DNA of 64,000 nucleotides, taken from the sequence record LT603033.1; one strand, written 5' to 3'. The position numbers and the translations under genes were made by a program. This document shows, piece by piece, positions 29,841-50,660 of the stretch. The notes under the pieces are model-generated. The model was given only the letters and a program-made list of their open reading frames with translations. It did not search any database and was not told the DNA's origin. How positions within the stretch are numbered: position 1 is the stretch's first letter; each line of letters begins with the position of its first letter.

Positions 29841-29871
29841 GATAGTTTCATTAACTCAAGGAGAACATGCA

Positions 29872-34285: not shown

Positions 34286-34315
34286 ATGATTGATATTAAT
34301 TTTAAGGGAGTCCCT

Positions 34316-34710: not shown

Positions 34711-34916
34711 AAACTATAACACGAACCCAATCATACGGTCTTATCTTGAAATACATGGACTTAATGGTGGATATCAGCAAAGACCTGCCTAAAACTGAAA
34801 TTGAAGTTGCAAGAGCAGAGATCCGCATGTTGGCTGTACTGAACACAAACCATCAGGAAGATTATGTTGAAGAATGGATTCGATTTTTAATAGAAGATAT
34901 TAAGAGTAAAATATGA
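34707..34916 (+). CDS. family B protein
   Basis: NTNHQE. Confidence 0.8.
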   Translation: MKTITRTQSYGLILKYMDLMVDISKDLPKTEIEVARAEIRMLAVLNTNHQEDYVEEWIRFLIEDIKSKI

Positions 34917-35128
34917 TTATTATAGAAAACTCATATCAATATACTGAACGCATCGCTGCCAGACAACTTGAAATCCTCATAATATACGAAGAGACGTCTG
35001 ATTTAAACTTAGCCGAGGTATTGGAAAATGAAATACTTTTGGGTGCATTCTTGGGAACAGACTATCAGGAGTATTATGAGGAAAAGTATTTGTCATCTCT
35101 TGAGAAATACATCAGGAGCAAATTATGA
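34913..35128 (+). CDS. family B protein
   Basis: GTDYQE. Confidence 0.8.
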   Translation: MIIIENSYQYTERIAARQLEILIIYEETSDLNLAEVLENEILLGAFLGTDYQEYYEEKYLSSLEKYIRSKL

Positions 35129-35337
35129 TTATATTAACACCTGAAGAATATAAGAAACGTTTTAATTCTGTCCAGACTGAAATATTACTTATATACCTTT
35201 CAAATGCAGACCTTAACTTATCAAGGGCAATGGAGAAGGATTTACTTATGGGTGCATTTTTGGATACAGACTTTCAGGAGTATTATGTAGGGAAATACTT
35301 AATTGAACTTCAGAACTACATTAAGAGTAAACTATGA
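35125..35337 (+). CDS. family B protein
   Basis: DTDFQE. Confidence 0.8.
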   Translation: MIILTPEEYKKRFNSVQTEILLIYLSNADLNLSRAMEKDLLMGAFLDTDFQEYYVGKYLIELQNYIKSKL

Positions 35338-35561
35338 AACATTTAAGTAATATTGAGAAGATGAGAATTATCATTGATGCATTAAACAAATACGATACCC
35401 TTTTACAAATAAAAGGTTTAACTCGATTGGAACACAAGATAAACACCACCGATGTACGCATGTTGGCTGTACTGGGGACGAACTTCCAGGAAGAGTATGT
35501 TATTGCACACATAGTTGCACTCAAGAATTACATTATGGACAAATGTAATGAACATCATTAA
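35334..35561 (+). CDS. family B protein
   Basis: GTNFQE. Confidence 0.8.
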   Translation: MKHLSNIEKMRIIIDALNKYDTLLQIKGLTRLEHKINTTDVRMLAVLGTNFQEEYVIAHIVALKNYIMDKCNEHH

Positions 35562-35772
35562 TAACTTTGAATACGAGGCCCGTGCTAAGAGTGCCAGAAA
35601 AAAAGAGAACACCATTTACTTCACTATGATGTACTTACAATGGACTGAAATTGAAGAAAAGGTTGCTGAAGTATGGATGTTGGAATTCATGGGGACGCAG
35701 TATCAGAATAGGTTTGCGGGTGAGTATATCGATGTTCTTATGAAACAAATAGAAAGAAAGGAAAAGAACTAA
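35548..35772 (+). CDS. family B protein
   Basis: GTQYQN. Confidence 0.8.
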   Translation: MNIINNFEYEARAKSARKKENTIYFTMMYLQWTEIEEKVAEVWMLEFMGTQYQNRFAGEYIDVLMKQIERKEKN

Positions 35773-35930
35773 TGGTTTTCATTAACATATCTGACCAACT
35801 CGATACTAAACTAGAAGTCGAGCAGAGTGAGGGATGGATGCTGTACTTTCTTGGAACTTCTCATCAAAATTTTTATATCCATGAACACATAGTTGCACTC
35901 ACAAATCTAATAAGGGATAAATGTAAATGA
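35772..35930 (+). CDS. family B protein (short, 52 aa)
   Basis: GTSHQN; TAATG overlap; not in track. Confidence 0.7.
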   Translation: MVFINISDQLDTKLEVEQSEGWMLYFLGTSHQNFYIHEHIVALTNLIRDKCK

Positions 35931-36184
35931 AACACTTGACGGACGATGAATATTCACTTAGAATTCGAAAGCTCACCCCAGAAGCAAGAGTAATCTACGA
36001 TGACGATGCACTTTCATGGAACGAGATGAAAGTTAAAGTTCATGAGCTATGGTTGCTGTACTTTGTGGGAACCCAATATCAAGAGAAATATTGTACCGAT
36101 TATCTTGAACAACTAATGGATTTTATACAGATAAAACTAAATGAACGAATTGTGGAAAAATATGAAAACTTTATCAAGCACTGA
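35927..36184 (+). CDS. family B protein
   Basis: GTQYQE. Confidence 0.8.
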   Translation: MKHLTDDEYSLRIRKLTPEARVIYDDDALSWNEMKVKVHELWLLYFVGTQYQEKYCTDYLEQLMDFIQIKLNERIVEKYENFIKH

Positions 36185-36413
36185 GTATCAGACTGCCCTC
36201 TTCTCTCTTCTAAACACCCTTCGCACTAACAATAAACTTTATAATTCCCGTGAAGCTGATATCGTCAACGCTGATGTATATCTTAATAAATTCATAGGGA
36301 CTAACTATCAAGAACTGTTCACTCTACGATATATCTCTGCATTGAGAAACGAAATATCAGATAAAACCCGCCAAGCCAGAAGAGAATGGAATAAACAATG
36401 CGACAAAGACTAA
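36162..36413 (+). CDS. family B protein
   Basis: GTNYQE. Confidence 0.8.
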   Translation: MKTLSSTEYQTALFSLLNTLRTNNKLYNSREADIVNADVYLNKFIGTNYQELFTLRYISALRNEISDKTRQARREWNKQCDKD

Positions 36414-36646
36414 ATCACAAAATGTATTGTAAACTATTGCAGACACTGGCACAGAAACACTATGACACGGTATCTGAAATATTACCCTATGATATCATGC
36501 GTTTACTTCACTGTGAAGCCGAGATGCTTGTACTGATGACAGGCACTGATAAAACAGCAATCGCCAGATCGATAGAGCAATATATTGATGCACACTACCA
36601 ACACATGAGAACCGAAATCTGGAGGAAAGAGAATGATAATTCTTAA
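36398..36646 (+). CDS. family B protein (divergent)
   Basis: GTDKTA. Confidence 0.75.
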   Translation: MRQRLNHKMYCKLLQTLAQKHYDTVSEILPYDIMRLLHCEAEMLVLMTGTDKTAIARSIEQYIDAHYQHMRTEIWRKENDNS

Positions 36647-36848
36647 TGAGTATCAGTATCATTGGAGGTTACAAACTATCAAATCAAAAGTGTATAGTAT
36701 TGTGTTAAACAAATCTATTGCACAAGAGGACAAATGTGTTATAATAGCTGAAATGAAGTTGGGTGTATTCGTAGGGACAAACTATCAAAACATCTACACT
36801 GACGTATTATTAAGTTCCTTACGTAACAAGGTGGTATCCAAAATATGA
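36633..36848 (+). CDS. family B protein
   Basis: GTNYQN. Confidence 0.8.
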   Translation: MIILNEYQYHWRLQTIKSKVYSIVLNKSIAQEDKCVIIAEMKLGVFVGTNYQNIYTDVLLSSLRNKVVSKI

Positions 36849-37063
36849 GAAATTTACAAGGCTTTGAATACATCAGACTCCTGAAAACATGTGGAAGCAG
36901 AAGGAGAATGATATCAAGCGATAAGAGCATCCAAGCTAACCTTAAGCACGCACTAGTAACTGAACTCTATGTAGGTGCACTCTTAGGCACAAACTATCAA
37001 CAAATGTATGTAGATCTATGGATTGACGCTCTACAGAAAGAGGTTAAAAGTAAATGCAAATGA
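36845..37063 (+). CDS. family B protein
   Basis: GTNYQQ. Confidence 0.8.
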   Translation: MRNLQGFEYIRLLKTCGSRRRMISSDKSIQANLKHALVTELYVGALLGTNYQQMYVDLWIDALQKEVKSKCK

Positions 37064-37272
37064 TTAATTTAAGTAAAGACGAATTTTATGTTATACTGGC
37101 GAAAACTTATCCAGCACGTAAGGCCGTTTATGATAGTCACATTATTGAACCCTCAAAGAAGTTGATTTTAGTAAATGAGATAAAGATGCTTTCAGTCTTA
37201 GGAACAAACTATCAAGAGAATGCTGTACTGATGTTAATTGATGCCCTCCAGCGAGAGGTTAAACGTAAATGA
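37054..37272 (+). CDS. family B protein
   Basis: GTNYQE. Confidence 0.8.
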   Translation: MQMINLSKDEFYVILAKTYPARKAVYDSHIIEPSKKLILVNEIKMLSVLGTNYQENAVLMLIDALQREVKRK

Positions 37273-37499
37273 AAATGATTCATTTAACTTACCATGAATA
37301 TCAAAAACGTTTAAATGCATCCAGAGATATAAGGATTCAAATATTCAATAACAAAAGATTGAAGCCTGATATCAGAAAAATCAAAATTATAGAAGCAGAG
37401 TTATGCAACTTTCTAGGGACCAACTATCAGGCAGGTAAGGTAAAAAACTATCTTAGAGAACTAATGAATAGTATTGAAAATAAATGTAAGGGTAATTAA
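37269..37499 (+). CDS. family B protein
   Basis: GTNYQA. Confidence 0.8.
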   Translation: MKMIHLTYHEYQKRLNASRDIRIQIFNNKRLKPDIRKIKIIEAELCNFLGTNYQAGKVKNYLRELMNSIENKCKGN

Positions 37500-37500
37500 C

Positions 37501-37740
37501 ATGAAAATGATTAAATTATCTCAAGCAAAATATAAAGAACGCCTGGTAAAAATTGCACCTGGACTTAATGAAATCCATCACGGAGAAGTCATTAAACACG
37601 GAAATAAGATGATTATGAAACTTGAGTTAAAGGTGGGTGCATTCATAGGAACAAACTATCAGGAGTATTATGTAGATGAATACATAATCGCACTTAAGAG
37701 ATATATTGGAAGAAAACTATATCTACAAACTAAAGAATAG
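37501..37740 (+). CDS. family B protein
   Basis: GTNYQE. Confidence 0.8.
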   Translation: MKMIKLSQAKYKERLVKIAPGLNEIHHGEVIKHGNKMIMKLELKVGAFIGTNYQEYYVDEYIIALKRYIGRKLYLQTKE

Positions 37741-37769
37741 TATTGAAAATAAATGTGAGGTTGATGAAC

Positions 37770-38033
37770 ATGCAAATGATCAATTTAAGTAAAGATGAAT
37801 ATACCGAGCGTATGACAAAAATTACGCACAAACGTAATACAATCTATCACAACCCAGAAATTCAACACAGTAAGAAAATGATTATGATGCGTGAGTTAAA
37901 GATGGGTGTATTCTTAGGAACAAACTATCAAGATACAGAAGTAAATCGCTTAATCGCGGAGTTACTACTGGAAATCAGAGGTAAGCTGTACTTTCATCAA
38001 ATGACCCAACCACTGAGGTGTACTAAGAAATGA
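37770..38033 (+). CDS. family B protein
   Basis: GTNYQD. Confidence 0.8.
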   Translation: MQMINLSKDEYTERMTKITHKRNTIYHNPEIQHSKKMIMMRELKMGVFLGTNYQDTEVNRLIAELLLEIRGKLYFHQMTQPLRCTKK

Positions 38034-38245
38034 TCAACATCACATTGCAAGAAAGATTCATCCGAATCAACTATGCAATTACCAAATTAGATGCTACTAT
38101 AGGATTCCAAAGTCTACCATACAAAACCAGATTGTTATTAGAGTGTGAAGCTAAGTTGGGTGTACTGTTAGGGACGCAACACCAACAACGATATGTGGAA
38201 ATCTGGATTGACCTTTTAACCCAAAATATATATGAGAGAATGTAA
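38030..38245 (+). CDS. family B protein
   Basis: GTQHQQ. Confidence 0.8.
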   Translation: MINITLQERFIRINYAITKLDATIGFQSLPYKTRLLLECEAKLGVLLGTQHQQRYVEIWIDLLTQNIYERM

Positions 38246-38476
38246 ATGCAAAATGAAATGATATACTTAACGAATGAAGAATTTCAAGAGAAGATGTTAA
38301 AAACCAAAAACATTACTCTTAAGTTCGGTCCAAATCAATCAATATCTGAAGTATCTGCAAATGTATTGTTTCAGAAGCTACCATACGTTCTTGGAACTGA
38401 TAAACAAGAATTTATGGTTCAAAATATGATTGAACATCTTATGATGAGTATTAAGGAAAAAGTAAATGCAAAATGA
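38246..38476 (+). CDS. family B protein
   Basis: GTDKQE. Confidence 0.8.
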   Translation: MQNEMIYLTNEEFQEKMLKTKNITLKFGPNQSISEVSANVLFQKLPYVLGTDKQEFMVQNMIEHLMMSIKEKVNAK

Positions 38477-38720
38477 AATGATATACTTAACCTATAATGA
38501 ATACGTCGAGAGATTAGTTCGTGCCAAGAGATATACCAATAAACGTCCAATTGACCTAAACCAAACCCCAGCAGAAAGGAGTGCAGAAGTATTATTCCAA
38601 TCACTACCATACCTTCTTGGAACTGATAGACAAGAGGAATATGTTGCACGTATGATTAGATATCTTAAAATCACTATTAAGGAAAAAGTAAATGCAAATG
38701 AAATACTTAACAGACGATGA
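38466..38720 (+). CDS. family B protein
   Basis: GTDRQE. Confidence 0.8.
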   Translation: MQNEMIYLTYNEYVERLVRAKRYTNKRPIDLNQTPAERSAEVLFQSLPYLLGTDRQEEYVARMIRYLKITIKEKVNANEILNRR

Positions 38721-38943
38721 GTTAAAAGAACGACTAATTAAATCAAGAAAACATACAAATCAACTTCCAAACGACACAAACAAGTCTCCAGCGGAAAGGA
38801 GTGCAGAAGTTTTATACATTCAACTCATGTACTTTCTTGGCACTGACAGACAAGAGTATTACATTGAAAGTATGCTTCGATATCTTAAATTCTCTATAAA
38901 GGAAAAGATACATGATCAAGTATTTAAAAATCCTAACAGTTAA
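38692..38943 (+). CDS. family B protein
   Basis: GTDRQE. Confidence 0.8.
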   Translation: MQMKYLTDDELKERLIKSRKHTNQLPNDTNKSPAERSAEVLYIQLMYFLGTDRQEYYIESMLRYLKFSIKEKIHDQVFKNPNS

Positions 38944-39154
38944 TGAATATCATAAGATTGTAATGAAAACTAATAGTGATTACGCTAAAAAATCAAACCC
39001 AAAGTACATACTGGAACACACATTTGAAGAACGTCAATTAGCTTTAGTTGAAGCAAAACTTCTTGCACTCCTAGGAACAAACTATCAGGAAGAATACATC
39101 AGAAAACTAATATACCTTTTAACTAAACATATAAGAAAAAGAAAAAATGCATGA
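38912..39154 (+). CDS. family B protein
   Basis: GTNYQE. Confidence 0.8.
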   Translation: MIKYLKILTVNEYHKIVMKTNSDYAKKSNPKYILEHTFEERQLALVEAKLLALLGTNYQEEYIRKLIYLLTKHIRKRKNA

Positions 39155-39381
39155 AACACTTGACAGATGATGAACATGGACTTATAGTAATGGATGTAAT
39201 CAACATCGAATACAAAAAGTTGATACGCTACCGTTGTTATGAAGATAAGCAACTCGTTCTAGCAGAACAGAAGTTGTTTCGACTCTTAAACACAAACTTC
39301 CAAGCACAATACGAAGAATCGTATATGTACCTTTTGGCGAGGAAAGCAAAAAGAGATTATGAAAATTTTAAGCAAAGGTGA
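39151..39381 (+). CDS. family B protein
   Basis: NTNFQA. Confidence 0.8.
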   Translation: MKHLTDDEHGLIVMDVINIEYKKLIRYRCYEDKQLVLAEQKLFRLLNTNFQAQYEESYMYLLARKAKRDYENFKQR

Positions 39382-39580
39382 TTCAGTAATATTACTTATA
39401 GAGAGTTCAAGTAAATTCTTAAACATAACACTGTCTGATATAGATGAAGATGACAAAGAAGTACTGAGAGCAGATTTAAGAGTACTGTTACATATCGGAA
39501 CAAACCTACAAGAAGAATATGTAGAGTGCTACATTAATGAACTTAAAGAATCAGTACTGAGAAAATGCAAATGCAAATGA
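39359..39580 (+). CDS. family B protein
   Basis: GTNLQE. Confidence 0.8.
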   Translation: MKILSKGDSVILLIESSSKFLNITLSDIDEDDKEVLRADLRVLLHIGTNLQEEYVECYINELKESVLRKCKCK

Positions 39581-39804
39581 AAATCATTTCACCCACAGAA
39601 TACAACCAACTATTAAGTAGTTTAATTCTAAAGCTGTTTATAACAAAAAGCATGAAATTACCAGATGATGAAATAAGTATTCTAGTAAGTGAAATCTATG
39701 TTCAAGCTACACTAGGGACTAACTATCAAGAATGCAATATTAATGATTACATCAATGAACTAAAAAGGTTTATCCAATGCAAATGCGAATCATTACCGAA
39801 GTAG
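39565..39804 (+). CDS. family B protein
   Basis: GTNYQE. Confidence 0.8.
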   Translation: MQMQMKIISPTEYNQLLSSLILKLFITKSMKLPDDEISILVSEIYVQATLGTNYQECNINDYINELKRFIQCKCESLPK

Positions 39805-40019
39805 AATACCTAACAATCATAAATGGACTGTTTTCGAAGTTATTTGCCATTAACACATCAAAACTTCCAGATTCTGATAAAATTATTAAGTTAAATGAAA
39901 TCTACGTTCAAGCTACTCTAGGAACAAACTATCAAGAAGCCAATGTGTATAATTACATTAATACACTCAAAAGGGTAATACAATTAAAATGCACAGACAG
40001 CACACACACAAACCCCTAG
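39777..40019 (+). CDS. family B protein
   Basis: GTNYQE. Confidence 0.8.
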   Translation: MQMRIITEVEYLTIINGLFSKLFAINTSKLPDSDKIIKLNEIYVQATLGTNYQEANVYNYINTLKRVIQLKCTDSTHTNP

Positions 40020-40219
40020 GAACAGCAGAATACATTGAACTAATGGCTGCAAACTTCTCATCCTTTAAGAAACTGATGCAAGAATCAAAGAATGATTTAG
40101 AATATCACATCAAAAGTTCAGATTTAAGATTGCTACTCACTCTAGGAACAGATTCCCAAGAGCGATTTGTCAATGAGCATATTAGAGCACTTTTAAATGG
40201 CATCAGGAATAAACTATGA
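39989..40219 (+). CDS. family B protein
   Basis: GTDSQE. Confidence 0.8.
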   Translation: MHRQHTHKPLGTAEYIELMAANFSSFKKLMQESKNDLEYHIKSSDLRLLLTLGTDSQERFVNEHIRALLNGIRNKL

Positions 40220-40431
40220 AGGAAATATCAAATCAAGAGTACTTGGCACTATTCAGGAAGAATAATCACAAATATATGGCACTTGATTCAAGAACTGATA
40301 TAAGTGAACTTGAAAAAAATCTTTTGCGTTCAGAGATGATAGTACTGACACTCTTAGGAACACAGCATCAAGAGAGAACTGTTAATTCACACATAGGGAT
40401 TCTTATGCAGATAGTTCAGGAAAAGATATGA
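40216..40431 (+). CDS. family B protein
   Basis: GTQHQE. Confidence 0.8.
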   Translation: MKEISNQEYLALFRKNNHKYMALDSRTDISELEKNLLRSEMIVLTLLGTQHQERTVNSHIGILMQIVQEKI

Positions 40432-40649
40432 GAATCATAACACAACAAGATATTCTTAAGTTCACAAGGGTTCATGCATCTGAATTTGATGCTATATTAT
40501 CAAAAAGTTACAACAACCCTTATACACAAGATGTACATTACAGTGAATTATGGATGTATATACTTTTAGGTACAAATAAGCAAGAGCAAGCCGTACAGAA
40601 GTATTTGACAGCTTTACGTGATGCTACTGCTAATGGAGTATGTGTTTAA
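40428..40649 (+). CDS. family B protein
   Basis: GTNKQE. Confidence 0.8.
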   Translation: MRIITQQDILKFTRVHASEFDAILSKSYNNPYTQDVHYSELWMYILLGTNKQEQAVQKYLTALRDATANGVCV

Positions 40650-40650
40650 T

Positions 40651-40893
40651 ATGAAAGTACTGACAGAACTAGAAATGTATCATAGATTTAATAAGTACTA
40701 TCATTTACTTAAGCCTATACAGAGGATTAAATGTCCATTTGAAGAGAAACAGGTTTTAATCTATGAGCACAAGTTCTTTGTATCATTAGGTACAGATCAA
40801 CAAGAGTACTATTTGACGTTGTACTTGATTACATTAATAGATTTAATTCACTATAAAACCAAACAAGCTAATAAAGAGAAATATGAAAACTAA
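40651..40893 (+). CDS. family B protein
   Basis: GTDQQE. Confidence 0.8.
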   Translation: MKVLTELEMYHRFNKYYHLLKPIQRIKCPFEEKQVLIYEHKFFVSLGTDQQEYYLTLYLITLIDLIHYKTKQANKEKYEN

Positions 40894-41589: not shown

Positions 41590-41618
41590 TTGACAGTACT
41601 TTTCATTACTGATATAGT
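41590..41618 (+). promoter_or_regulatory. sigma70 promoter, extended -10
   Basis: TTGACA-17-TGaTATAGT. Confidence 0.7.
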
Positions 41619-41649
41619 ACCTGTACGTTAATCATTAGGGTAGAAAATT

Positions 41650-41895
41650 ATGTTAAATTTTTTAAATTTCCTTATCGTCTTGTGTATTGTTCTTGGGATT
41701 GCACCATTTGTATTATATTTCATGGATTCAGATGAAATGCAGAAGATGAATTGCACAAGGACAGGACAGAGTAGAGTAGAGACGATTCTTATGCCTGTTA
41801 CGGTTATTGTTAACAACATGCCCATTACGAACATGGTCCCTACCCTAACGACAACGTACCAGTACTCTTGTGCTGACGGAGAGAGGTGGAGATGA
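41650..41895 (+). CDS. membrane-anchored hypothetical protein
   Basis: N-terminal hydrophobic helix; Cys pair in the soluble part. Confidence 0.7.
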   Translation: MLNFLNFLIVLCIVLGIAPFVLYFMDSDEMQKMNCTRTGQSRVETILMPVTVIVNNMPITNMVPTLTTTYQYSCADGERWR

Positions 41896-42203
41896 AATTT
41901 AATATAGCAAAAACATCTAATATATGTATATTTGGTTATGCCGAAGAGTTGGGTGATATTGACATTCTTTTGTACAAAAAGGATGGTGTTATGCATTTCA
42001 AGTACCAGGATGAAGAGGCAGACAATTATCTTTTACCTAATTTAGTACAAATGCAGGAAGATGAATTATTCCAGTACAGCTTAGTATACGACATTGATAT
42101 TTGCACGATGCCAGTACTAATTAGTATTCAAAAAGTGATGCTCGATATGTATGATAAGCTAATACAAGGTATGTCAGGGAGGATCATTGAAATTGACATA
42201 TAA
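41886..42203 (+). CDS. family C protein
   Basis: MQEDELFQYSLVYD. Confidence 0.8.
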   Translation: MEMKFNIAKTSNICIFGYAEELGDIDILLYKKDGVMHFKYQDEEADNYLLPNLVQMQEDELFQYSLVYDIDICTMPVLISIQKVMLDMYDKLIQGMSGRIIEIDI

Positions 42204-42399
42204 GAATATACCTAATGCATATGAAATGAAGTACAGGGAGTTTATTAAAAATGTACACACCGATCCTTTTAATATCAAAATATCAGATTTTGATGTATTA
42301 TTTTATCTAGGGACAATAGCACAGGATCAATGCGTTGATAAGCTCATATGGTCCTTGAAAATGGAGATACAATGCAGACCCAAATATATAAAAAGGTAG
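42187..42399 (+). CDS. family B protein (dispersed)
   Basis: FYLGTIAQD. Confidence 0.75.
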   Translation: MKLTYKNIPNAYEMKYREFIKNVHTDPFNIKISDFDVLFYLGTIAQDQCVDKLIWSLKMEIQCRPKYIKR

Positions 42400-42635
42400 A
42401 TTCTTTATTGTACGCTTCAAAGTACAGGGATTTTTGTTTACGAGGGGGAGAGGAAGATTTCTCTCTGAGATTATCTGAATTTAATATGTTATTTTATCTT
42501 GGTACAAAAGATCAAGAAGATACAGTACAGAAATTTATCAAGCACCTTGAACAAAAAATTCATATGCAAATTTTTATGCTTAAGGTACATAATGAGATAA
42601 ACAAATATGAACCCAACAATAGTACAGGATCTTAA
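42348..42635 (+). CDS. family B protein (dispersed; start uncertain)
   Basis: FYLGTKDQE. Confidence 0.7.
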   Translation: MVLENGDTMQTQIYKKVDSLLYASKYRDFCLRGGEEDFSLRLSEFNMLFYLGTKDQEDTVQKFIKHLEQKIHMQIFMLKVHNEINKYEPNNSTGS

Positions 42636-42993
42636 AAAAGTAATATTTCTTTTGAATACCAGAAGTGAATTGTATACAGAGTTAAAAGAGATTAATGCAT
42701 TTTATCAGAATTTTGTAATCCAAGAGATCAGTGATTTAATTACAGATGCATTATTTGAATTATCGGAGAAATACAAAGGTTCAGAGTTCAGTGTTAAGAA
42801 TGTTATTCGTCCAAGTGCAAGGAAAATTATATTATCACATTTTACATTTGACAATAAAGATTTATTCAGTCATAATCCAAGTACAGCTTTATATTTTATT
42901 CCTGATTCAGACAAAAATCATCCTATTCATTACGGATGGATTTTGTCATATATAGTACAAGGAAAGGAGTATCCTATTAAATGGAAAGATTAG
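42607..42993 (+). CDS. hypothetical protein
   Basis: 128-aa ORF in the operon. Confidence 0.7.
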   Translation: MNPTIVQDLKKVIFLLNTRSELYTELKEINAFYQNFVIQEISDLITDALFELSEKYKGSEFSVKNVIRPSARKIILSHFTFDNKDLFSHNPSTALYFIPDSDKNHPIHYGWILSYIVQGKEYPIKWKD

Positions 42994-43142
42994 GGCGATT
43001 AGATTATTACACAATTAATACAAATTATTTGTTGCGTAATATAAAATCCGATTACAAAATATGGATAAAGAACAGAGATAGCATGTGTTATGAATTTTAT
43101 TTAGATTATGCTATCAAACGATTTTTAAGAGAAGAACATTAA
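42981..43142 (+). CDS. small hypothetical protein (53 aa)
   Basis: AAGGAG RBS; fills the operon gap. Confidence 0.55.
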   Translation: MERLGRLDYYTINTNYLLRNIKSDYKIWIKNRDSMCYEFYLDYAIKRFLREEH

Positions 43143-43345
43143 TGCAAAAGATTAATACGATAACATTAAATGCATTACAGGATTCATTATTAGATAGTAT
43201 TAAGATGTATTACAATATACATTTGAAGGGTGGTATTGATAATTACGATTATTATTTGAGTTTAATTACATTTGAGCACCTTTCAGTACAGGACAGGATT
43301 TTACATCCTACAAATCCTAGGTATCCATCGATAGGTAAATTATGA
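43142..43345 (+). CDS. hypothetical protein
   Basis: TAATG coupling. Confidence 0.65.
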   Translation: MQKINTITLNALQDSLLDSIKMYYNIHLKGGIDNYDYYLSLITFEHLSVQDRILHPTNPRYPSIGKL

Positions 43346-43890
43346 ATGAGATAGAGTTATTAGCACACAAGATAAGTACAATAATGCTTATCCTCAATAA
43401 CAACCATCCTATATCGCATATAGATGGAATCCTGAGTCAGAGGACAGGTGGTAGTTTATATTTGTCCATAAACGCAGATATCGCAAGGAAATACATTGAT
43501 ATTGATGTTGAAATCGAATATGATACAACGGGGATTGTTGATGTAGGTGCATTAATCAGTTCAAATCCAGTATCAGCATCCCCATTGACCAAAGATGTTA
43601 GTACAGGATTCGAAGGATATTTGTGGTACAATACCAATGATGATTATTTTATATATCAGCATTCCAATACAAATTATGATGAAGACAAATTTCAGTTCAT
43701 AGACCCTTATGATGAAGCTGAAGTATTTCAAAAATCATTAATCACAAAACCGCATGAGATGATGTATCTAATGTTATTCAGTACAATGCATTTGAATCCA
43801 TTAATTAAAGGTTTAAAATTTTATATTCAATTAAATTTAGTCCATGTAGTTTATGATTTATTAATGCAAGGATATAGTTATGAAGTATAA
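43342..43890 (+). CDS. family C protein
   Basis: DEAEVFQKSL; duplicate of 43962-44468. Confidence 0.8.
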   Translation: MNEIELLAHKISTIMLILNNNHPISHIDGILSQRTGGSLYLSINADIARKYIDIDVEIEYDTTGIVDVGALISSNPVSASPLTKDVSTGFEGYLWYNTNDDYFIYQHSNTNYDEDKFQFIDPYDEAEVFQKSLITKPHEMMYLMLFSTMHLNPLIKGLKFYIQLNLVHVVYDLLMQGYSYEV

Positions 43891-43938
43891 AATGATGTAT
43901 ACCCCAAGATATGATTTATGTTGAATTAGAAGATGATG
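43880..43938 (+). pseudogene. frameshifted 5' fragment of the 44458 gene (duplication scar)
   Basis: ATGAAGTATAAAATGATGTATACCCC(A)AGATATGATTTATGTTGAATTAGAAGATGATG matches 44458 onward with one extra A. Confidence 0.75.
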
Positions 43939-43961
43939 CATCCATCAATAGGTAATAATAT

Positions 43962-44468
43962 ATGAATGAGATAGAATTATTAGCACACAAGATTAGTACA
44001 GTAATGCTTATGCTCAAGAATAATCATTCTATGCATAAGTACATTTATATAGGTGATTTACGCATAGAAGATAGATATGATAAATTATCGTTTTTGTTTA
44101 AAGATGAAAGTAATGCAAAAGTTTGTTTTGCAGCATTTGCCCAAGGCAATCCAGAACAAGCATCTCCTGTTATATACGAAAATAGTGAAGGGTATTTGTG
44201 GGTCAACACAAACGATTATTTCTTTTATGATTTGAAACAAAATGATGAAGTAGAAGCACGAATTGATTTAATTGATATTAGTTCAGATTGTAGTTCTGAA
44301 TTATTTCAGAAATCGTTATTATACAGTCCTCGTCAAATACATTATCTAAAGTTATTCAGTTCATTGTACGCGAATCCTTTAATTAAGGGTTTTAAATTTT
44401 ATATCAAAATTCCGTACCTTTCAAACGTTTATGATATTTTGATGCAAGGATATAGTTATGAAGTATAA
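43962..44468 (+). CDS. family C protein
   Basis: SSELFQKSLLYS. Confidence 0.8.
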   Translation: MNEIELLAHKISTVMLMLKNNHSMHKYIYIGDLRIEDRYDKLSFLFKDESNAKVCFAAFAQGNPEQASPVIYENSEGYLWVNTNDYFFYDLKQNDEVEARIDLIDISSDCSSELFQKSLLYSPRQIHYLKLFSSLYANPLIKGFKFYIKIPYLSNVYDILMQGYSYEV

Positions 44469-44769
44469 AATGATGTATACCCCAGATATGATTTATGTTG
44501 AATTAGAAGATGATGACGATGGGTGGAATTTGATTTATTCAAGAAGTTCAGGTTGGTACATGGCACATTTAAATGATTCGATAGTTACAGATTATTTTGT
44601 AGATTTCAATACATTATCCGATGAAGAATTGTTCCAACAGCAATTAGTGATTGACACGGGTGGTTATGATGTCTTATTATTAAAAAAGATACAGAAAGCT
44701 GTTATTGATTTTAAGCCCATGATATGGCAAAGGAAATATTATGACCTCGAAGTACCGTACCAGCAATGA
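44458..44769 (+). CDS. family C protein
   Basis: LSDEELFQQQLVID. Confidence 0.8.
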   Translation: MKYKMMYTPDMIYVELEDDDDGWNLIYSRSSGWYMAHLNDSIVTDYFVDFNTLSDEELFQQQLVIDTGGYDVLLLKKIQKAVIDFKPMIWQRKYYDLEVPYQQ

Positions 44770-45307
44770 AATTCAGTACACCTACGCTAATGCAATCCTT
44801 ATGGGACAAAAGTTAGCTTGTATTGTTGCAGCCTTATATAATGCACAGAAATATCACAAGCGTCATTTCCACAAATGTATTGGTATTATTCCATCGAAGT
44901 ACAATACATATATTGCGTGCACGAGTCATTTTGATAAACGATTCAATACACCTGATACCCCAAATTCCCGTAGTGTTATTGGTCTTTTGGATTTCGCACC
45001 TGGTGCTGTTATTGGAAAGAATGATTTAGAGTACGCATGGTATAATAAAAATGCCCCGTTAGTAATGGTAAAATATGATACAGAAACGAACAAAACAATA
45101 GAGTACAATACATATAAATCAGAGGAAGAATTTTTCCAAGGTTCATTGCTTGTGCCAGTGCGTTTGTTGTTTTATAATGTCCTTATTAGTACAGTACACA
45201 ATAGTCCATTACACAAGAATCACAAAATTAATTTCAATTTTTGTGCTTATGCAATTGATGGTGTGTATGAGTGTTTAATGGAGGTATTGAGTTATGAAGC
45301 TGAATAA
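44741..45307 (+). CDS. family C protein
   Basis: SEEEFFQGSLL. Confidence 0.8.
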   Translation: MTSKYRTSNEIQYTYANAILMGQKLACIVAALYNAQKYHKRHFHKCIGIIPSKYNTYIACTSHFDKRFNTPDTPNSRSVIGLLDFAPGAVIGKNDLEYAWYNKNAPLVMVKYDTETNKTIEYNTYKSEEEFFQGSLLVPVRLLFYNVLISTVHNSPLHKNHKINFNFCAYAIDGVYECLMEVLSYEAE

Positions 45308-45635
45308 TACATTTGATATTAATAAGTTAAGAGAATGGTTTTATAGTATTGAAATTGAAGCCATCCCGTATCATAGATATGAACAATATAATTTAACCAG
45401 TATTGATATCAGTGAGTTGTACGCGTATTATCAAAGTGCATTAGAGATGCATAAGTTATTTTTGAGTACAGATTTTGTTCTAAATTACAATTTTGAGGAA
45501 TTTAATAATTATAATTTAGTACAGAAATATGTAGTAGCAAAGTATATGTACCTTCAAGGAATTACAAGTAATTTGGAATTCAATACAGTCCTTGCTTTAG
45601 TTGAGGTAATTTTATGCAGTACATGTATGATTTAG
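45294..45635 (+). CDS. hypothetical protein
   Basis: GGAGG RBS; no family C motif seen. Confidence 0.7.
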   Translation: MKLNNTFDINKLREWFYSIEIEAIPYHRYEQYNLTSIDISELYAYYQSALEMHKLFLSTDFVLNYNFEEFNNYNLVQKYVVAKYMYLQGITSNLEFNTVLALVEVILCSTCMI

Positions 45636-46120
45636 AGTTTAGTTTAGATGCTGCATTTAAATATGTTCACAAGATAGAAACAATATACAGTACATTATGT
45701 GCAATACAATCAGTATCATCTGAGTTTGATGTTGGTGAAAAATATCAGGTATGGAATAATACATTTCTAAACAAAGAACGTTGCTCTACGGGGTTTAATA
45801 TTTTAACATTTAATCCCAGCAATTGTTACCCAGAGAAGCATGAACGTTATCCGAATGACGACATGTGGTTTGATTACACAAAAGATGGTGATATGTCATC
45901 CCTTGTAGTTCCTGATGATTTTAATGCCGAAGATTTAACGGAAGAGTGGTGGTTTCAACAGAATTTAGTACACGATGATATTGATTTATTTTTTTATGTA
46001 GTATTTAAAATGCTTTACCACAACAATATATTAAAAGATAGTGTGTTTTTTTCATGTCTATATATTGATGATTTGTACAATGAAATCCAAATCAACATTC
46101 CCAGCACGCCTGTATCGTAA
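45614..46120 (+). CDS. family C protein
   Basis: LTEEWWFQQNLVHD. Confidence 0.8.
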   Translation: MQYMYDLEFSLDAAFKYVHKIETIYSTLCAIQSVSSEFDVGEKYQVWNNTFLNKERCSTGFNILTFNPSNCYPEKHERYPNDDMWFDYTKDGDMSSLVVPDDFNAEDLTEEWWFQQNLVHDDIDLFFYVVFKMLYHNNILKDSVFFSCLYIDDLYNEIQINIPSTPVS

Positions 46121-46135
46121 GATATGGGCTTTTTT
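46108..46135 (+). terminator. Rho-independent terminator
   Basis: GCCTGTATC-GTAA-GATATGGGC-TTTTTT; followed by promoter TTGACA-17-TATCAT at 46146-46174. Confidence 0.75.
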
Positions 46136-46202
46136 CGTTTTGGTATTGACAAAGAAGTGCAAAGCTGTTATCATGTGTAATCATTTTAAAGGAGAACATA
46201 TA

Positions 46203-46715
46203 GTGAGTTTCATAATCCCAAGTACATACGAAGATGCATCAAGTGCAGTTCATAAGATTCATTATATTTTTAATTTAATTATTAGATCTGCAAAAAATAA
46301 AATGTATGCACCTCTTGTGGAATACGATAAAAATGAGGAAATTTTTGTTAGCACAGACCAAATTATTTTTCCATATTTCAATGAAGATAGATTGTGGTTC
46401 ATGCATTTAGCTGCATTACAAAAATATAAAATGTCAATTCGTAATAATTTGGATATACCGTTATATCATCCTGATATTGGAGAGGATGAATATTTTCAGT
46501 ACAGTACAGTACACCGCCATGAAGATATCTTTGTTGCTATGCTTATTGCTAAATTGAATACCGTTGATTTGGAGCAGTACAAATACAATAATAAATCATG
46601 TAAGATCATAATCCCTGCATTCATAGCTCTTTATGATTATGTGGTGCATAACAAAAAAGATGATACATATGCTTTCAATGAAGAGTATTTGAATTTTTTT
46701 AAGGAGAACATATGA
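46203..46715 (+). CDS. family C protein
   Basis: GTG start behind GGAG; GEDEYFQYSTVH. Confidence 0.75.
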   Translation: MSFIIPSTYEDASSAVHKIHYIFNLIIRSAKNKMYAPLVEYDKNEEIFVSTDQIIFPYFNEDRLWFMHLAALQKYKMSIRNNLDIPLYHPDIGEDEYFQYSTVHRHEDIFVAMLIAKLNTVDLEQYKYNNKSCKIIIPAFIALYDYVVHNKKDDTYAFNEEYLNFFKENI

Positions 46716-47239
46716 GCAGTGACGTGCAGAAATCAATGACATTCAATGAAATTGGTGCATTTAAAGATAAGATCATTGATTGTCTTGAATACATGATTTG
46801 TAGTAATATCGAAAGTATCGAGATATTTAACAAGACAAATCGCTCTTACCATATGATGTACATTGCAAACAATAATGGTATCATTCCATTTATTTCGGAT
46901 AGTACAATATGGTACGCATGTGATACGAAAAAAACCACAATAGGTTTACATTTATTTGAGACACATTATGATCTAATTATTCCTGAACATTGTATGCAAG
47001 AAGAAGAATATTTTCAAATGCAATGTATACATTCACCATTAGTGTTGTTTAGTTTATATATTATACCTTATATCACCAAATGTGTTCATGAGAATAAAGC
47101 TCCGTGGAATCATGAATTTGTATCGTTGAAGTTATTGTATAATGTATTAGTAGAATATTATGATTACAGGCACAATGGTACAATCAGTGATGTATGGGAT
47201 TTTGAATCGCTAAGGGTGAAAACATACACAGGTGAATGA
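46712..47239 (+). CDS. family C protein
   Basis: MQEEEYFQMQCIH. Confidence 0.8.
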   Translation: MSSDVQKSMTFNEIGAFKDKIIDCLEYMICSNIESIEIFNKTNRSYHMMYIANNNGIIPFISDSTIWYACDTKKTTIGLHLFETHYDLIIPEHCMQEEEYFQMQCIHSPLVLFSLYIIPYITKCVHENKAPWNHEFVSLKLLYNVLVEYYDYRHNGTISDVWDFESLRVKTYTGE

Positions 47240-47855
47240 TATGACCAGAATTAAAATGTATGATTTGATGCAGTACAGTAAAATTGCCATTCCGGTGCTT
47301 AATAAAGTGCTGGATGCATTCATTGCCAAATACCCTGAGAATTCAGTGTTATGTATTCCATTTAGTGTTCCAGATAAAGATGATATATTTCAAGTGAATG
47401 TCAGTACACGTGGTATTACATTGCAGCAGAAATACATGGATACGGAATATTATGGAATAAAGTTGGATTCAGTACAGGGTTCTAAATCAGCCTATGATTT
47501 TTTTGTTCCTAATAACATCGAGTCATGGGAAACAAACATTTCAAAGAAAGATGAAAATGATGTTCCTATTAGTGGTGTGTTCAACAATAAAGTTTTTTAT
47601 TATTACGAAACCGACAAATTCCCTGAAGAGTTATATTACAATTCAGAAATGAATGAAGATGTAGATGCATTCATGTTTCAATTATCTTTAGTACATGATA
47701 TCATTGATGTTCAAGAGTTAAGAGCAGAAATCAATTTAGCTAAAGAGTTATCGGACATGCTGCCACCGTTTAGTATGCTTTTTTGTGAAGGTGGTTATTT
47801 TTCAAAAGAAGTGTTTGAACATTTCGTAGATGTTGTAAAAGGGTTGGATATATAG
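47232..47855 (+). CDS. family C protein
   Basis: DAFMFQLSLVHD. Confidence 0.8.
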   Translation: MNDMTRIKMYDLMQYSKIAIPVLNKVLDAFIAKYPENSVLCIPFSVPDKDDIFQVNVSTRGITLQQKYMDTEYYGIKLDSVQGSKSAYDFFVPNNIESWETNISKKDENDVPISGVFNNKVFYYYETDKFPEELYYNSEMNEDVDAFMFQLSLVHDIIDVQELRAEINLAKELSDMLPPFSMLFCEGGYFSKEVFEHFVDVVKGLDI

Positions 47856-47856
47856 T

Positions 47857-48051
47857 ATGCTTACAGTTGATGTTAAACAAAAATACCGTAAGTTTGATTG
47901 GTTCACCGATAGTTTCCAGCTTGAATTATTACATATGAATATCAGTGAAACATTATGTGCAGAAACACAAGATGAATTTGATGATAGAGTGATGAACATA
48001 GTAATGCTTTCTTGCTTTAAACATTTTGGTTATTTTTTCGGACAGAATTGA
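47857..48051 (+). CDS. small hypothetical protein
   Basis: ORF in the operon. Confidence 0.65.
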   Translation: MLTVDVKQKYRKFDWFTDSFQLELLHMNISETLCAETQDEFDDRVMNIVMLSCFKHFGYFFGQN

Positions 48052-48059
48052 GGTAAAAA

Positions 48060-48575
48060 ATGCATCAACACAAGCATCATTCATATGATTTTGCAATTAA
48101 CATTATGAAGTTCATTCGAGCGTTGGAGGATGGGAAGCTTAGTCATAAGTACAGGAAAGAGGGTAACAATTGGTTCAGAAATGATTCCGAGTTCAGTTGT
48201 CATAAAATCGTGTATAGTAATCAGTACAGTGCCAATTACCTACAAGATGTAGTGATGTGTTTTGAATACGTGTTGCAGTTCAGGGGTTCAATCCAAGATG
48301 AGTTGATGGAGAACATGTACATCAGATACCTTCCAATGCTCAAAGATGAAAATGTATTATTAAATTCAATATACCAACGAGTTCGTGAAATTGAGTGCAG
48401 GGATATATTAGATACAGAAGAATCGTATTTCCAGCAATCCCTGATTTATTCACCTGATTTATTACAGGTACATAATTTGTTTAATACATTACGTCAGAAC
48501 ATCAGTACAGACATATTTTTGTCATTATCGGATTATGATACATTTGTCAAAGATTTAGAGGAAATAGGATTATGA
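48060..48575 (+). CDS. family C protein
   Basis: TEESYFQQSLIY. Confidence 0.8.
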   Translation: MHQHKHHSYDFAINIMKFIRALEDGKLSHKYRKEGNNWFRNDSEFSCHKIVYSNQYSANYLQDVVMCFEYVLQFRGSIQDELMENMYIRYLPMLKDENVLLNSIYQRVREIECRDILDTEESYFQQSLIYSPDLLQVHNLFNTLRQNISTDIFLSLSDYDTFVKDLEEIGL

Positions 48576-48916
48576 GTAGATTTTCAGTTTATATAGTAAA
48601 CGTCAGTAAAGATGGTAGTTTAATTGAATTTGATGTAGTTGATAACAATGATAATTCATATGGTATTAAGGTACAGGACAATGTAGTGCAGTTCAGTACA
48701 AGGACAAATTTTGAGAATCCAGTCCAAGTTCCGAATTTCATAGAAGATGAAGCTGCACGATTCCAATACGAAACGGCCTTTGATAATATGCATATGCATA
48801 TTATTATGCAACAAAGTTTAGTTCAATTGCTTCAGGTATTCAGACAAAATATATATGTACATGAAGTGTCGATTAATGGCATTCAAAGTTCCGTATTGTT
48901 CGGTACAAATATGTAA
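48572..48916 (+). CDS. family C protein
   Basis: EDEAARFQYETAFD. Confidence 0.75.
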   Translation: MSRFSVYIVNVSKDGSLIEFDVVDNNDNSYGIKVQDNVVQFSTRTNFENPVQVPNFIEDEAARFQYETAFDNMHMHIIMQQSLVQLLQVFRQNIYVHEVSINGIQSSVLFGTNM

Positions 48917-48926
48917 GGAAAGTACA

Positions 48927-49478
48927 ATGAGTTCAATGAGTTTATTAGATACATTAGAAAAAGACAGAAGTGCAATTAAGCGTTTAAAAGAGCAAGTACA
49001 AAAGATTGTATACAACGTTGATAAGTTTGAAGTCCCAGGAAGATTTGGTGATATTTCCCATACGGAGATCAAATCCCTTAAGTCAGATTTGTTGATTAAA
49101 AATAAAAATGGGTTGATTTTAGTTTTGAGTTCAGATATGATGGGGGCAACACATAGTTATAATGCAGTATCGGTGCGTTCAGAGTGTGAAGGTATATATC
49201 TATCACAGGGTTTCAATAGCGAGACACAGGTTTGTTTTTGTGATGCAGTACATGACCCTATGAAGTTCACGAGAAGTGAAGCCCAAGCGTTATTAGAGCT
49301 ATCAGACGAGAGTTTGTTTCAGTACAGTACAATGTATGACAATGATAAGCTTCGTTGTATGTACGCTGTAAAGCATTATACACAGGAGTTCTCTGGATTT
49401 GCATACCTTTTAGTTAGAACCAATACCAGATATATTGATATGTTAGAAGATTACATCGATAAAGTTGTTAATGTATGA
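48927..49478 (+). CDS. family C protein
   Basis: Start trimmed; LSDESLFQYSTMYD. Confidence 0.8.
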   Translation: MSSMSLLDTLEKDRSAIKRLKEQVQKIVYNVDKFEVPGRFGDISHTEIKSLKSDLLIKNKNGLILVLSSDMMGATHSYNAVSVRSECEGIYLSQGFNSETQVCFCDAVHDPMKFTRSEAQALLELSDESLFQYSTMYDNDKLRCMYAVKHYTQEFSGFAYLLVRTNTRYIDMLEDYIDKVVNV

Positions 49479-49493
49479 TTATGTGATGGGATA

Positions 49494-49670
49494 ATGCTGA
49501 TGAAAGAGTTATTTGAAGATCAGTTCAATACATATGTGGATAATATTCTTTATTCCAGCCGTGCTAGTCAACGAGGAAATCGTGCTTACAATATAGATTA
49601 CCTATTAGTGGTGCTGAGTTCACAGTACACCAATGCGGTACAAAGGGTTTATTATGAAAAGTGCAAGTAA
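49494..49670 (+). CDS. small hypothetical protein (58 aa)
   Basis: Fills the operon gap; not in track. Confidence 0.55.
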   Translation: MLMKELFEDQFNTYVDNILYSSRASQRGNRAYNIDYLLVVLSSQYTNAVQRVYYEKCK

Positions 49671-49863
49671 TAGTGATATTGCAAAGGAGAAGTTGGAGTG
49701 CAGTTTAGATTACGGTTTAAATGATTTTCTTACATGCACAATGTACAGGAATGATGATTATGAGCAATCCGTAATTTCGTTGCACAGATATTTCGAAATA
49801 ATTTACGCAAGATATCTTAGAAGGTTAGAGGGAATAGGGGATTGGAATTATGATTACGTTTGA
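49654..49863 (+). CDS. small hypothetical protein
   Basis: Start trimmed to MKSASNS. Confidence 0.6.
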   Translation: MKSASNSDIAKEKLECSLDYGLNDFLTCTMYRNDDYEQSVISLHRYFEIIYARYLRRLEGIGDWNYDYV

Positions 49864-50074
49864 AGAGCCGGAAGTGGTATATTGCTATAGTGTGAAAGGT
49901 TTTGAATACATGATGGATTCTATTTTGAAGGATACATATTTGGTTCAGATTGCAGTTGCAGATAATACAGATAATGCATTACAGCGAGTATTGAATATAT
50001 ACGAGAAGACGAGTCGAAGGCTTTGTGCAATGAAAAGGATTGAAGAAATCAAGCTTTCTAGGCTGAATAAATAG
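49850..50074 (+). CDS. small hypothetical protein
   Basis: Overlaps the previous stop. Confidence 0.65.
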   Translation: MITFEEPEVVYCYSVKGFEYMMDSILKDTYLVQIAVADNTDNALQRVLNIYEKTSRRLCAMKRIEEIKLSRLNK

Positions 50075-50105
50075 AGACGTTTCATTTTGACAGGCCGCAG
50101 GGGGT

Positions 50106-50160
50106 NNNNNNNNNNNNNNNNNNNNNNNNNNNNNNNNNNNNNNNNNNNNNNNNNNNNNNN
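50106..50160. other. assembly gap (55 N)
   Basis: Run of N flanked by GC-rich tracts. Confidence 0.99.
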
Positions 50161-50276
50161 TATTGTGTTTTTCAGAGTACAGTTCATGTTTCCTGAAACA
50201 AAAAATACCCCGCCCCCGCAACGTGCTCCTTATATTGGAGTTTACCTTATTAATTACAGTAGAGATTACAATTGAA

Positions 50277-50660
50277 ATGAAGATGCAAATAAAATATAAT
50301 GAATTTTGTGCAAGGACATGGATGTACACTGGTGAGTTAGTTACGCACTGTAACTTATACAAGGGTGATTTAAACTACGCCAGGGACAAGATTTTAAAGT
50401 ACTGGAATGCTGACTTTTATTTGATGGATTTTAGTACTGGGTTTCATGGGATATCTATCGAGATGCCGGACTATACAGTACTTGATGATGCTGCACTGTT
50501 TCAGGAGGCATTAGTATTTGATAAGAAGTACATCTGTACATTAGAAGAGATGATTGAATTACAGCGTAGAATTAAATGTATTCACAGGGAATGTATAGAT
50601 ATCTGGTGCAGTACTGGTGAGGCCGATTTATGGAAATTTTTTAATCTAGGAGAAGAGTGA
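50277..50660 (+). CDS. family C protein
   Basis: Start trimmed; LDDAALFQEALVFD. Confidence 0.75.
   Translation: MKMQIKYNEFCARTWMYTGELVTHCNLYKGDLNYARDKILKYWNADFYLMDFSTGFHGISIEMPDYTVLDDAALFQEALVFDKKYICTLEEMIELQRRIKCIHRECIDIWCSTGEADLWKFFNLGEE

Follow-up and report, generated by a model that had tools for sequence, protein, structure and literature searches.

What is being avoided where a jumbo phage loses, over more than 8 kb, a short DNA word that it otherwise carries far above chance? The question is raised by a window of 64,000 nucleotides (bases 62001-126000, + strand, of record LT603033.1) from Escherichia phage vB_Eco_slurp01 (Asteriusvirus PBECO4, 348,043 bp), a giant or jumbo phage of the Rak2-like clade that infects E. 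coli. Positions given below are those of this window unless a record is named. The hexamer AGTACT occurs 266 times in the window and not once in 42119-50397, here called the block; its last copy stands at 42113 and the next at 50398. The block is equally devoid of GTACT (361 in the window) and TGTACT (52 in the window), and it holds 43 of the 104 AGTACA. These counts agree with a sequence-only reading of the DNA, which had described the absence of AGTACT and GTACT, about 40 AGTACA on the + strand with no TGTACT, and the return of AGTACT at 50398. With 8,285 bp, the block is the longest AGTACT-free gap of the genome, followed by one of 5,378 bp (34082-39460) and then by gaps of at most 2.1 kb. 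Motif-gap analyses of the genome treated 55 masked positions in the window as N, and hexamers of the whole genome were counted in the unmasked sequence.

The word under constraint is shorter than the hexamer. Several words related to the block, namely TACTG, TACTA, ACTAA, ACTAT, ACTGA, and AAACT, have the core ACT in common, and ACT itself is absent from a strict zone of the + strand (Table 1), of which 8,154 of the 8,209 bases are readable and were counted, the 55 masked bases being excluded. The immediate flanks predict 159 ACT, and none was seen. The whole genome contains 6,729 ACT and its second-longest ACT-free gap measures only 444 bp, which gives the zone a Poisson log10 P of about -65 at the genome rate and about -79 at the local rate. 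When the same block proteins were re-encoded with the codon usage of the flanks, 112 ± 9 ACT resulted, with a minimum of 86 in 1000 resamplings. For trinucleotides other than ACT, no comparable triplet-free zone was found in slurp01 or in phage 121Q. AGTACT and all GTACT are lost from the block because both contain ACT. The earlier suggestion that the palindrome AGTACT is selected against in this domain therefore needs rewording: the palindrome is indeed excluded, as a consequence of the exclusion of ACT from the sense strand.

The absence of ACT does not depend on the reading frame. All 20 annotated coding sequences (CDS) of the strict zone (42372-50074) lie on the + strand and encode hypothetical proteins. 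ACT counts in their three frames are 0/0/0, compared with 48/56/43 when scaled from flank genes. Threonine accounts for 4.3% of the residues in zone genes and 5.0% in the flanks, encoded exclusively by ACA, ACC, and ACG, and both NAC codons and CTN leucine codons are thinned. The zone has been purged of ACT through synonymous recoding and the choice of adjacent codons. On the + strand of the zone, 209 copies of the complementary triplet AGT are present. Since ACT is missing in all frames with unchanged use of threonine, the constraint acts on nucleic acid, not on protein or transfer RNA (tRNA), and it acts on one strand, the sense strand of every zone gene. A protein-level cause was also rejected for the hexamers, as the sites of AGTACT and AGTACA, like the missing ACT, are spread over all three frames. 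Among other triplets, ACA is enriched 1.4-fold in the zone and GCT is not depleted. TCT is also low, with 40 copies compared with 92 expected from the flanks; the same agent may have TCT as a minor target, or the deficit may be a by-product of the recoding.

Within the block, AGTACT has a substitute. AGTACA is its nearest ACT-free form and stands in for it at equal density, with 5.2 AGTACA per kb in the block and 5.3 AGTACT per kb elsewhere in the window. The sites have the sequence context CAGTACAG, and some are arranged in tandem (46498/46503/46508). Only AGTACA is strongly raised among the variants counted in the block (43, expected from the flanks 15.5), which further comprise 8 AGTATT (expected 11.9), 9 AGTAAT, 1 AGTACC, and 1 AGTACG. 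In an alignment of slurp01 with Ecwhy_1 (79% nucleotide identity), 21 AGTACA sites are shared and about 20 are private to each phage, none of them opposite AGTACT; in 121Q, 0 of the 41 alignable sites reads AGTACT. The matched density, the conservation of half of the sites, the roughly 20 new sites per lineage, and the lack of any facing AGTACT point to ongoing selection, and the conservation described below shows that both the ACT ban and the AGTACA density are actively maintained.

A rival to selection on ACT is a purely mutational origin, in which a strand-specific process without selection on ACT, such as transcription-coupled deamination or error-prone repair, would have altered the non-template strand of a highly transcribed unit. 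ATT, the C-to-T product of ACT, is indeed raised 1.4-fold in the block, and the unit has strong predicted promoters. Yet AGTACT is replaced by AGTACA, a change from T to A, and not by AGTATT; the absence is total in several diverged lineages with intact open reading frames (ORFs); and the equally promoter-rich early genes of the terminal repeat are full of ACT. Such an origin is very improbable.

The one-sidedness of AGTACA had also been taken as possible evidence that the real signal is a polar AGTAC pentamer. A one-strand AGTAC stand-in is indeed kept in the block; the asymmetric variants AGTAC[ACG] and [CGT]GTACT are balanced outside record positions 100-130 kb, and the one-orientation state is confined to that stretch, so that AGTACT cannot be reduced to a concealed polar pentamer. 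A genome-wide AGTAC/GTACT polarity linked to replication or packaging was rejected on the same grounds. A related possibility is an orientation rule for half-sites. A reader that binds AGTACT as a dimer might also bind AGT and ACT half-sites, and half-sites in one direction would bar the inverted pair and with it the dimer, loop, or cut, much as T7 has its EcoP15I sites in a single orientation. The ratios of ACT to AGT (0:209) and of AGTACA to TGTACT (43:0) on the + strand would follow from such a rule, which is also in line with the final ACT before the zone always lying within an AGTACT and with AGTACA being held at full motif density. However, the orientation-dependent enzymes that are known need more than a half-site of 3 bp, the rest of the genome carries ACT and AGT intermingled at about 20 per kb each without harm, and the mirror polarity of a second AGTACT-free stretch (block 1, see below) stems from a coding motif conserved among paralogues. 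The rule is accordingly considered improbable.

The ACT-free state is common to all Asteriusvirus records checked. ACT-free runs occur at the homologous place in phages 121Q, phAPEC6, Ecwhy_1, fEgEco12, and Turkey5, and a shorter one in Salmonella phage Munch (Table 1), and the block is contiguous and in the same state in these phages and in the deposited slurp01 record. The block protein encoded at 47241-47855 shows 99-100% identity within the PBECO4/121Q group and 54-57% in the Ecwhy_1 group. Overall, block proteins are 22-96% identical to those of Ecwhy_1 and 24-33% identical to those of Turkey5. The Munch zone carries 11 AGTACA, and its four genes have no detectable similarity to the block genes of slurp01. 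In RaK2, GAP32, and CBB no triplet-free zone of any kind was found, so that, within the clade, only phages of E. coli and Salmonella have the zone. Zero occurrences against some 160 expected, kept down to 24% protein identity, place the zone among the cleanest signatures of selection on raw phage nucleotide sequence.

This conservation decides the question of whether the block is foreign or artefactual. The sequence-only reading had proposed a segment imported from a relative with a different signature, and had named a scaffolded chimera of two strains as a serious alternative in view of a run of N at the right edge; a polishing error at a modified site would have the same appearance. In RaK2 and GAP32, no homologues of the block genes were detected, as an import would predict. 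The import is refuted because absence in all three frames is a constraint and not a composition signature; moreover, the state is found in all Asteriusvirus lineages and persists at 24-57% protein identity, with AGTACA sites being gained and lost. The N run comprises 55 bases, and LT603033.1 was deposited without any N. Because both flanks are letter-identical to the deposited record at the single offset of 62000, with exactly 55 bases between them, the run is a mask and no scaffold join. The block is matched at 80-100% identity in 34 phage records, it shows the same state in records from independent laboratories and platforms, and it is held by DNA runs from about 10 studies, including metagenomes. 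Synteny is kept on both sides and no composition break exists at the block beyond the motif itself, so that the locus does not resemble a horizontally acquired island. As the zone is conserved, its AGTACA sites turn over, and independent runs agree, assembly chimera, polishing artefact, and recent import are excluded as far as sequence data allow, and an origin of this kind retains next to no credibility. The further claim that the same gene families run through block and flanks found weak support, in the form of distant block/flank similarity only (blastp E 1e-2 to 1e-5).

The limits of the zone were set against predicted promoters and genes. On the left, the last ordinary ACT (41608) lies inside the spacer of a predicted promoter, and from there to 50328 ACT is found only within the two AGTACT sites at 41861 and 42113. 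In every lineage checked, the final ACT ahead of the zone belongs to an AGTACT. The promoter sequence and the downstream pattern of ACT confined to AGTACT (2-3 sites) recur in 121Q, phAPEC6, Ecwhy_1, and fEgEco12, so that in four lineages the left edge lies at a predicted promoter which is conserved. Two exceptions to the pattern exist, a stray ACT in Ecwhy_1 and one ACT located 3 nt past the -10 element in phAPEC6, which is probably ahead of the transcript start. In Turkey5, the homologous promoter (L082 10767) is followed by a few ACTs and then by the zone. An unannotated ORF of 81 codons (41650-41895) with a hydrophobic N-terminal half directly follows the promoter and is kept in Turkey5. 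The right edge lies beyond the last gene: the zone spans the following spacer plus the next promoter and ends 6 nt into the next gene, and in the other lineages it ends 45-139 nt into the following gene. Inside the zone, a predicted hairpin and a promoter-like site suggest a division into two transcription units.

Table 1. Features of the slurp01 window (window positions) and ACT-free runs in related phages.
Feature	Position or length	Strand	Remarks
Predicted sigma70-type promoter	41590-41618	+	TTGACA-17-TATAGT preceded by TG; 11/12 match; AGTACT overlaps -35
AGTACT retained in the relaxed ACT-free zone (41611-50327)	41861-41866		Motif scan
Last AGTACT before the strict zone	42113-42118		Motif scan
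Strict ACT-free zone	42119-50327, 8,209 bases	+	Bounding ACTs at 42116 and 50328, 8,212 bp apart
43 AGTACA sites (+1 AGTACC, +1 AGTACG)	42230-50181	all +	Three frames (18/11/11) and spacers
Internal terminator-like hairpin and promoter-like site	Hairpin 46108-46129 plus T run; promoter-like site 46146-46174	+	Sequence prediction
Masked N run	50106-50160		Spacer between CDS end 50074 and CDS start 50322; no reading frame affected
Promoter-like site of the next gene (CDS 50322-50660)	50272-50300	+	Sequence prediction
ACT-free run, 121Q	7,511 bp		Homologous place
ACT-free run, phAPEC6	7,626 bp		Homologous place
ACT-free run, Ecwhy_1	7,839 bp		Homologous place
ACT-free run, fEgEco12	8,293 bp		Homologous place
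ACT-free run, Turkey5	4,402 bp plus adjacent 717 bp		Homologous place
ACT-free run, Salmonella phage Munch	1,955 plus 434 bp (MK268344.1 25179-27566)	+	Split by one ACT (25612); four genes
Homologue of the fEgEco12 direct terminal repeat	14519-34218	+	Left end maps to 14519, right boundary at about 34218
Second AGTACT-free stretch (block 1)	34083-39459	+	Lies among 29 tandem paralogues of about 70 aa each

A ban that is absolute, independent of frame, restricted to the sense strand, and bounded by a promoter is most simply accounted for if the transcripts must not contain ACU, being cut, bound, or terminated there. The block would accordingly consist of one or two early or middle transcription units, whose messenger RNAs (mRNAs) are free of ACU. 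A trans-acting factor is proposed to recognise ACU on single-stranded sense RNA, leaving the block mRNAs immune. This factor is most probably a triplet-specific endoribonuclease of the mRNA-interferase kind, either made by the phage or derived from the E. coli and Salmonella hosts, and would cut or silence nearly all other messages while about 20 block proteins are still made. Independently, the palindrome (C)AGTACT(G) is under selection at the DNA level throughout the Rak2-like clade; as it is forbidden inside an ACU-free unit, selection would retain AGTACA there, in one orientation only. That the block mRNAs are immune to an ACU-recognising factor, most probably an endoribonuclease, is assigned a probability of about one half, both the RNA level and the nuclease being deduced from the sequence pattern. 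That only E. coli and Salmonella phages of the clade carry the zone is compatible with an agent tied to the host as well as with one peculiar to these phages. A broader version, in which a global ACU-specific shut-off of RNA takes place during Asteriusvirus infection, the "immune regulon" of about 20 genes alone stays expressed, and (C)AGTACT(G) serves as a conserved signal for a putative reader, is advanced tentatively.

Precedents for the proposed immunity come from toxin biology. MazF cuts ACA, ChpB cuts AC[A/G/U], MqsR cuts GCU, and the Salmonella enzyme MazF-SEA cuts UAC[G/U] (PMC5408214, PMC12151602, PMC10864209), and ACA-less mRNAs are selectively translated in MazF-arrested cells (PMC5408214). 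In the single-protein-production system based on ACA-less mRNA and MazF, as well as in the GCU-poor genes that go with MqsR, synonymous recoding likewise clears the sense strand of the triplet that a ribosome-independent endoribonuclease recognises. Neither the opposite strand nor the protein is affected, and the message remains translatable while other transcripts are cut (PMC5408214). The phage block shares the expected pattern, with the triplet absent from the sense strand in all frames, the amino acids kept, and the antisense strand unconstrained. It differs in that the triplet is ACU and the recoding is natural, extends over about 20 genes and 8.2 kb, and is genus-wide. If the proposed immunity holds, the engineered ACA-less/MazF system would have in the block its first natural counterpart that spans many genes.

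Several results weigh against immunity of this kind. The published specificities (ACA, AC[A/G/U], GCU, UAH/UUACU, and UAC[G/U]) do not fit, as ACA, ACG, and GCT remain in the block. An enzyme with bare ACU specificity was neither found nor is one described. No MazF-like gene (phrog_1936, E<=1) was detected in slurp01, fEgEco12, Turkey5, or Munch, a search that left out other RNase folds and the host strains. In every lineage the zone continues through a spacer of 200-340 bp and 6-139 nt into the next gene, an overshoot that pure protection of mRNA does not require unless transcripts read through. In Munch, the zone begins about 125 nt into a gene, at a place where no promoter is predicted, and a few AGUACU are tolerated near the 5' end. 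Lastly, the banned triplet is half of the genome's own palindrome AGT/ACT, a coincidence with a chance of about 4/64 that hints at a shared reader at the DNA level.

The search for an agent included genes confined to zone-bearing phages. Slurp01 and Munch have 13 genes in common that lack a match in RaK2, GAP32, and CBB, and no evident nuclease is among them. One of the 13 encodes a T7 gp0.7-like protein kinase (phrog_15752; LT603033.1 44018-44692, L004:4018-4692), belonging to a family annotated as acting on RNase E and RNase III. The distribution of this kinase is the same as that of the ACT-free zone. Public RNA data consist of sparse, low-depth metatranscriptome contigs inside and outside the block, which are uninformative on expression or cleavage. 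The zone predicts an agent that can be tested for, an ACU- or ACT-specific nuclease or binder that acts while the phage infects E. coli or Salmonella. Should this agent be a toxin of the host, the recoding of a whole operon would represent a new form of counter-defence; if it is made by the phage, it would represent a novel way of shutting off the host and could become a triplet-specific tool for RNA work.

The main rival reading is strand-specific recognition of 5'-ACT-3' in DNA, by which the top strand would be spared priming, nicking, or modification over 8 kb near the left genome end. Candidates for such recognition are the start triplet of a primase, comparable to GTT and GCT in T4 and GTC in T7, the site of a nickase, and the target motif of a toxin that modifies single-stranded DNA, such as DarT. 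In all lineages the zone extends over the spacer behind the last gene and the promoter that follows, and in Munch it starts inside a gene; its position is syntenic at about 7.4 kb (slurp01) and about 4 kb (Munch) past the terminal-repeat boundary, its absoluteness would make sense if one such event sufficed to be lethal, and ACT is half of a palindrome that is enriched at the DNA level. On the other hand, in four lineages a conserved promoter marks the left edge, the constrained strand is the sense strand for all zone genes, and no replication-linked polarity is seen elsewhere in the genome. Nor can a purpose be named for a desert of priming or nicking. Recognition at the DNA level is therefore regarded as unlikely, and immunity of the block mRNAs as the preferred reading.

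Under that preferred reading, the approximately 20 orphan genes of the block are marked as those which the phage must keep expressing while the agent is active. Their products matched only families of unknown function in PHROGs and had no match in NCBIfam. Two large protein searches covering billions of proteins returned an orphan family with only a handful of relatives. A feature search of the Atlas gave a weak DUF4303 lead with a score of 0.86, below the trust level, and an AlphaFold model (pLDDT 75) had no fold match in the PDB by Foldseek or VIA (best Z 3.9), nor in the Atlas.

The hexamer that the ban removes is a signature of the whole clade. AGTACT occurs 904 times in slurp01, an excess of about 8-fold; composition predicts 118 copies, and the reversed control TCATGA has 136. 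The counts are 903 in 121Q, 937 in RaK2, 940 in K64-1, 1011 in GAP32, 1235 in CBB, and 850 in Munch, an excess of about 6-8-fold in each of these relatives, which have only a minority of genes in common with slurp01. The extended form is the palindrome CAGTACTG, i.e., (C)AGTACT(G), which is found 214-224 times in A4 and Turkey5, with 2-4 occurrences of the control. AGTACT sites lie in all three frames and in spacers. Between slurp01 and 121Q, motif positions diverge by 2.3% and their flanks by 4.6%, roughly half, and no such effect is seen for the control hexamer. In the sigma70-type promoters of the early region (e.g., 16678-29600), AGTACT has fixed places, abutting or overlapping the -35 element (AGTACTTGCAA, TTGACAGTACT) or abutting the -10 element (AGTACTGTATAAT). 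Because it is 8-fold over chance across the clade, stands at fixed promoter positions, and is kept as AGTACA in the zone, AGTACT is a functional DNA signal, retained in degraded form even where the ACT ban conflicts with it. It is best described as a selected double-strand DNA signal read by a putative protein. Biased repair resembling very-short-patch (VSP) repair was rejected as the driving force, since the one-step neighbours of AGTACT are not depleted (all 1.1-2.5 fold), making an origin by repair drive unlikely. As a separate observation, two hexamer pairs contained in the E. coli Chi octamer, CTGGTG/CACCAG and TGGTGG/CCACCA, exceed the composition expectation 4-5-fold in slurp01, RaK2, and GAP32.

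Local or strand-specific loss of a short word has been explained in other phages by sequence-specific nucleases. The first-step-transfer DNA of T5 lacks EcoRI sites, the EcoP15I sites of T7 are all in one orientation, and RegB of T4 cuts GGAG in early mRNAs. These cases resemble the ACT-free zone in their location near the early-gene end of the genome and in the use of a short motif to tell temporal classes of messages apart. They involve sites of 4-6 bp of which a handful are lost, whereas the phage block lacks a 3-nt word on one strand, with about 160 copies expected and 0 present. Evasion of a type III system, as in T7 and EcoP15I, does not describe the block, where the single orientation is only local and the excluded word has 3 nt. 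Avoidance of a ScaI-type enzyme would concern the same hexamer and its local loss; in contrast to the genome-wide depletion of the palindrome which this would entail, AGTACT is strongly enriched in the genome, and its local loss is strand-specific and extends to every ACT. With Chi, KOPS, and uptake sequences, AGTACT shares an abundance far above chance, presence in all frames, and conservation within a clade, together with a variant (AGTACA) that is regionally in one orientation. It differs from them in being palindromic, in occupying fixed positions in early promoters, and in having variants without a genome-wide polarity switch: skew does not change at an origin or terminus, the variants being balanced outside the stretch named above. 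The ACT-free zone thus belongs to recognition-word avoidance, differing from the known cases in word length, completeness, scale, and the lack of a known agent. A literature search for AGTACT with jumbo phages gave no match, a search for CAGTACTG gave unrelated primers only, and the genome papers on Sharanji, CBB, and fEgEco12 mention neither the motif nor the zone. As far as found, both are undescribed in the searchable literature.

The zone lies close to a putative genome end. Phage fEgEco12 has experimentally supported direct terminal repeats of 20,993 bp (PMC13070987), and the homologous region of slurp01 (Table 1) consists of short early genes that are individually preceded by sigma70-type promoters; AGTACT reaches its highest density here (137 in 20 kb). 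The circular slurp01 record probably collapses a long terminal repeat. Many early transcripts of this region are predicted to begin with ACATC, followed by a GGGGA...TCCCC hairpin. A perfect tandem repeat of 60 bp x 3.3 (14314-14509) with CAGTACTG in each unit ends 10 bp before the equivalent of the fEgEco12 left terminus, and a 53-bp x 2.6 repeat (16061-16200) is situated in the same non-coding stretch of 2.2 kb. Both repeats are candidate packaging or terminus signals.

The next-longest AGTACT-free stretch, block 1, starts some 140 bp from where the terminal repeat is inferred to end on the right. The paralogue array in which it lies extends over 34316-40893, with one additional member at 56004. 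Block 1 is a phenomenon separate from the ACT-free zone, because ACT is not depleted there (133 compared with about 106 expected) and AGTACT is just not enriched, its chance expectation being about 1.8. A mirror-image polarity of block 1 about a central origin was considered and rejected, as its GTACT sites are mostly located at one homologous coding position of the paralogue family.

Further paralogues are found on the minus strand at 1038-9425, where seven tandem genes encode proteins of about 370-400 aa related to GAP32_001 and to several Munch genes; the record note of GAP32_001 cites similarity to an RCC1-type protein. Outside the window, ARAGORN predicts a tRNA-Ser at LT603033.1 15634-15725 (locus L002) whose anticodon, ACU, is unusual and reads AGU; these genes use AGU more than any other serine codon. 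Slurp01 also has a tRNA-Thr(UGU).

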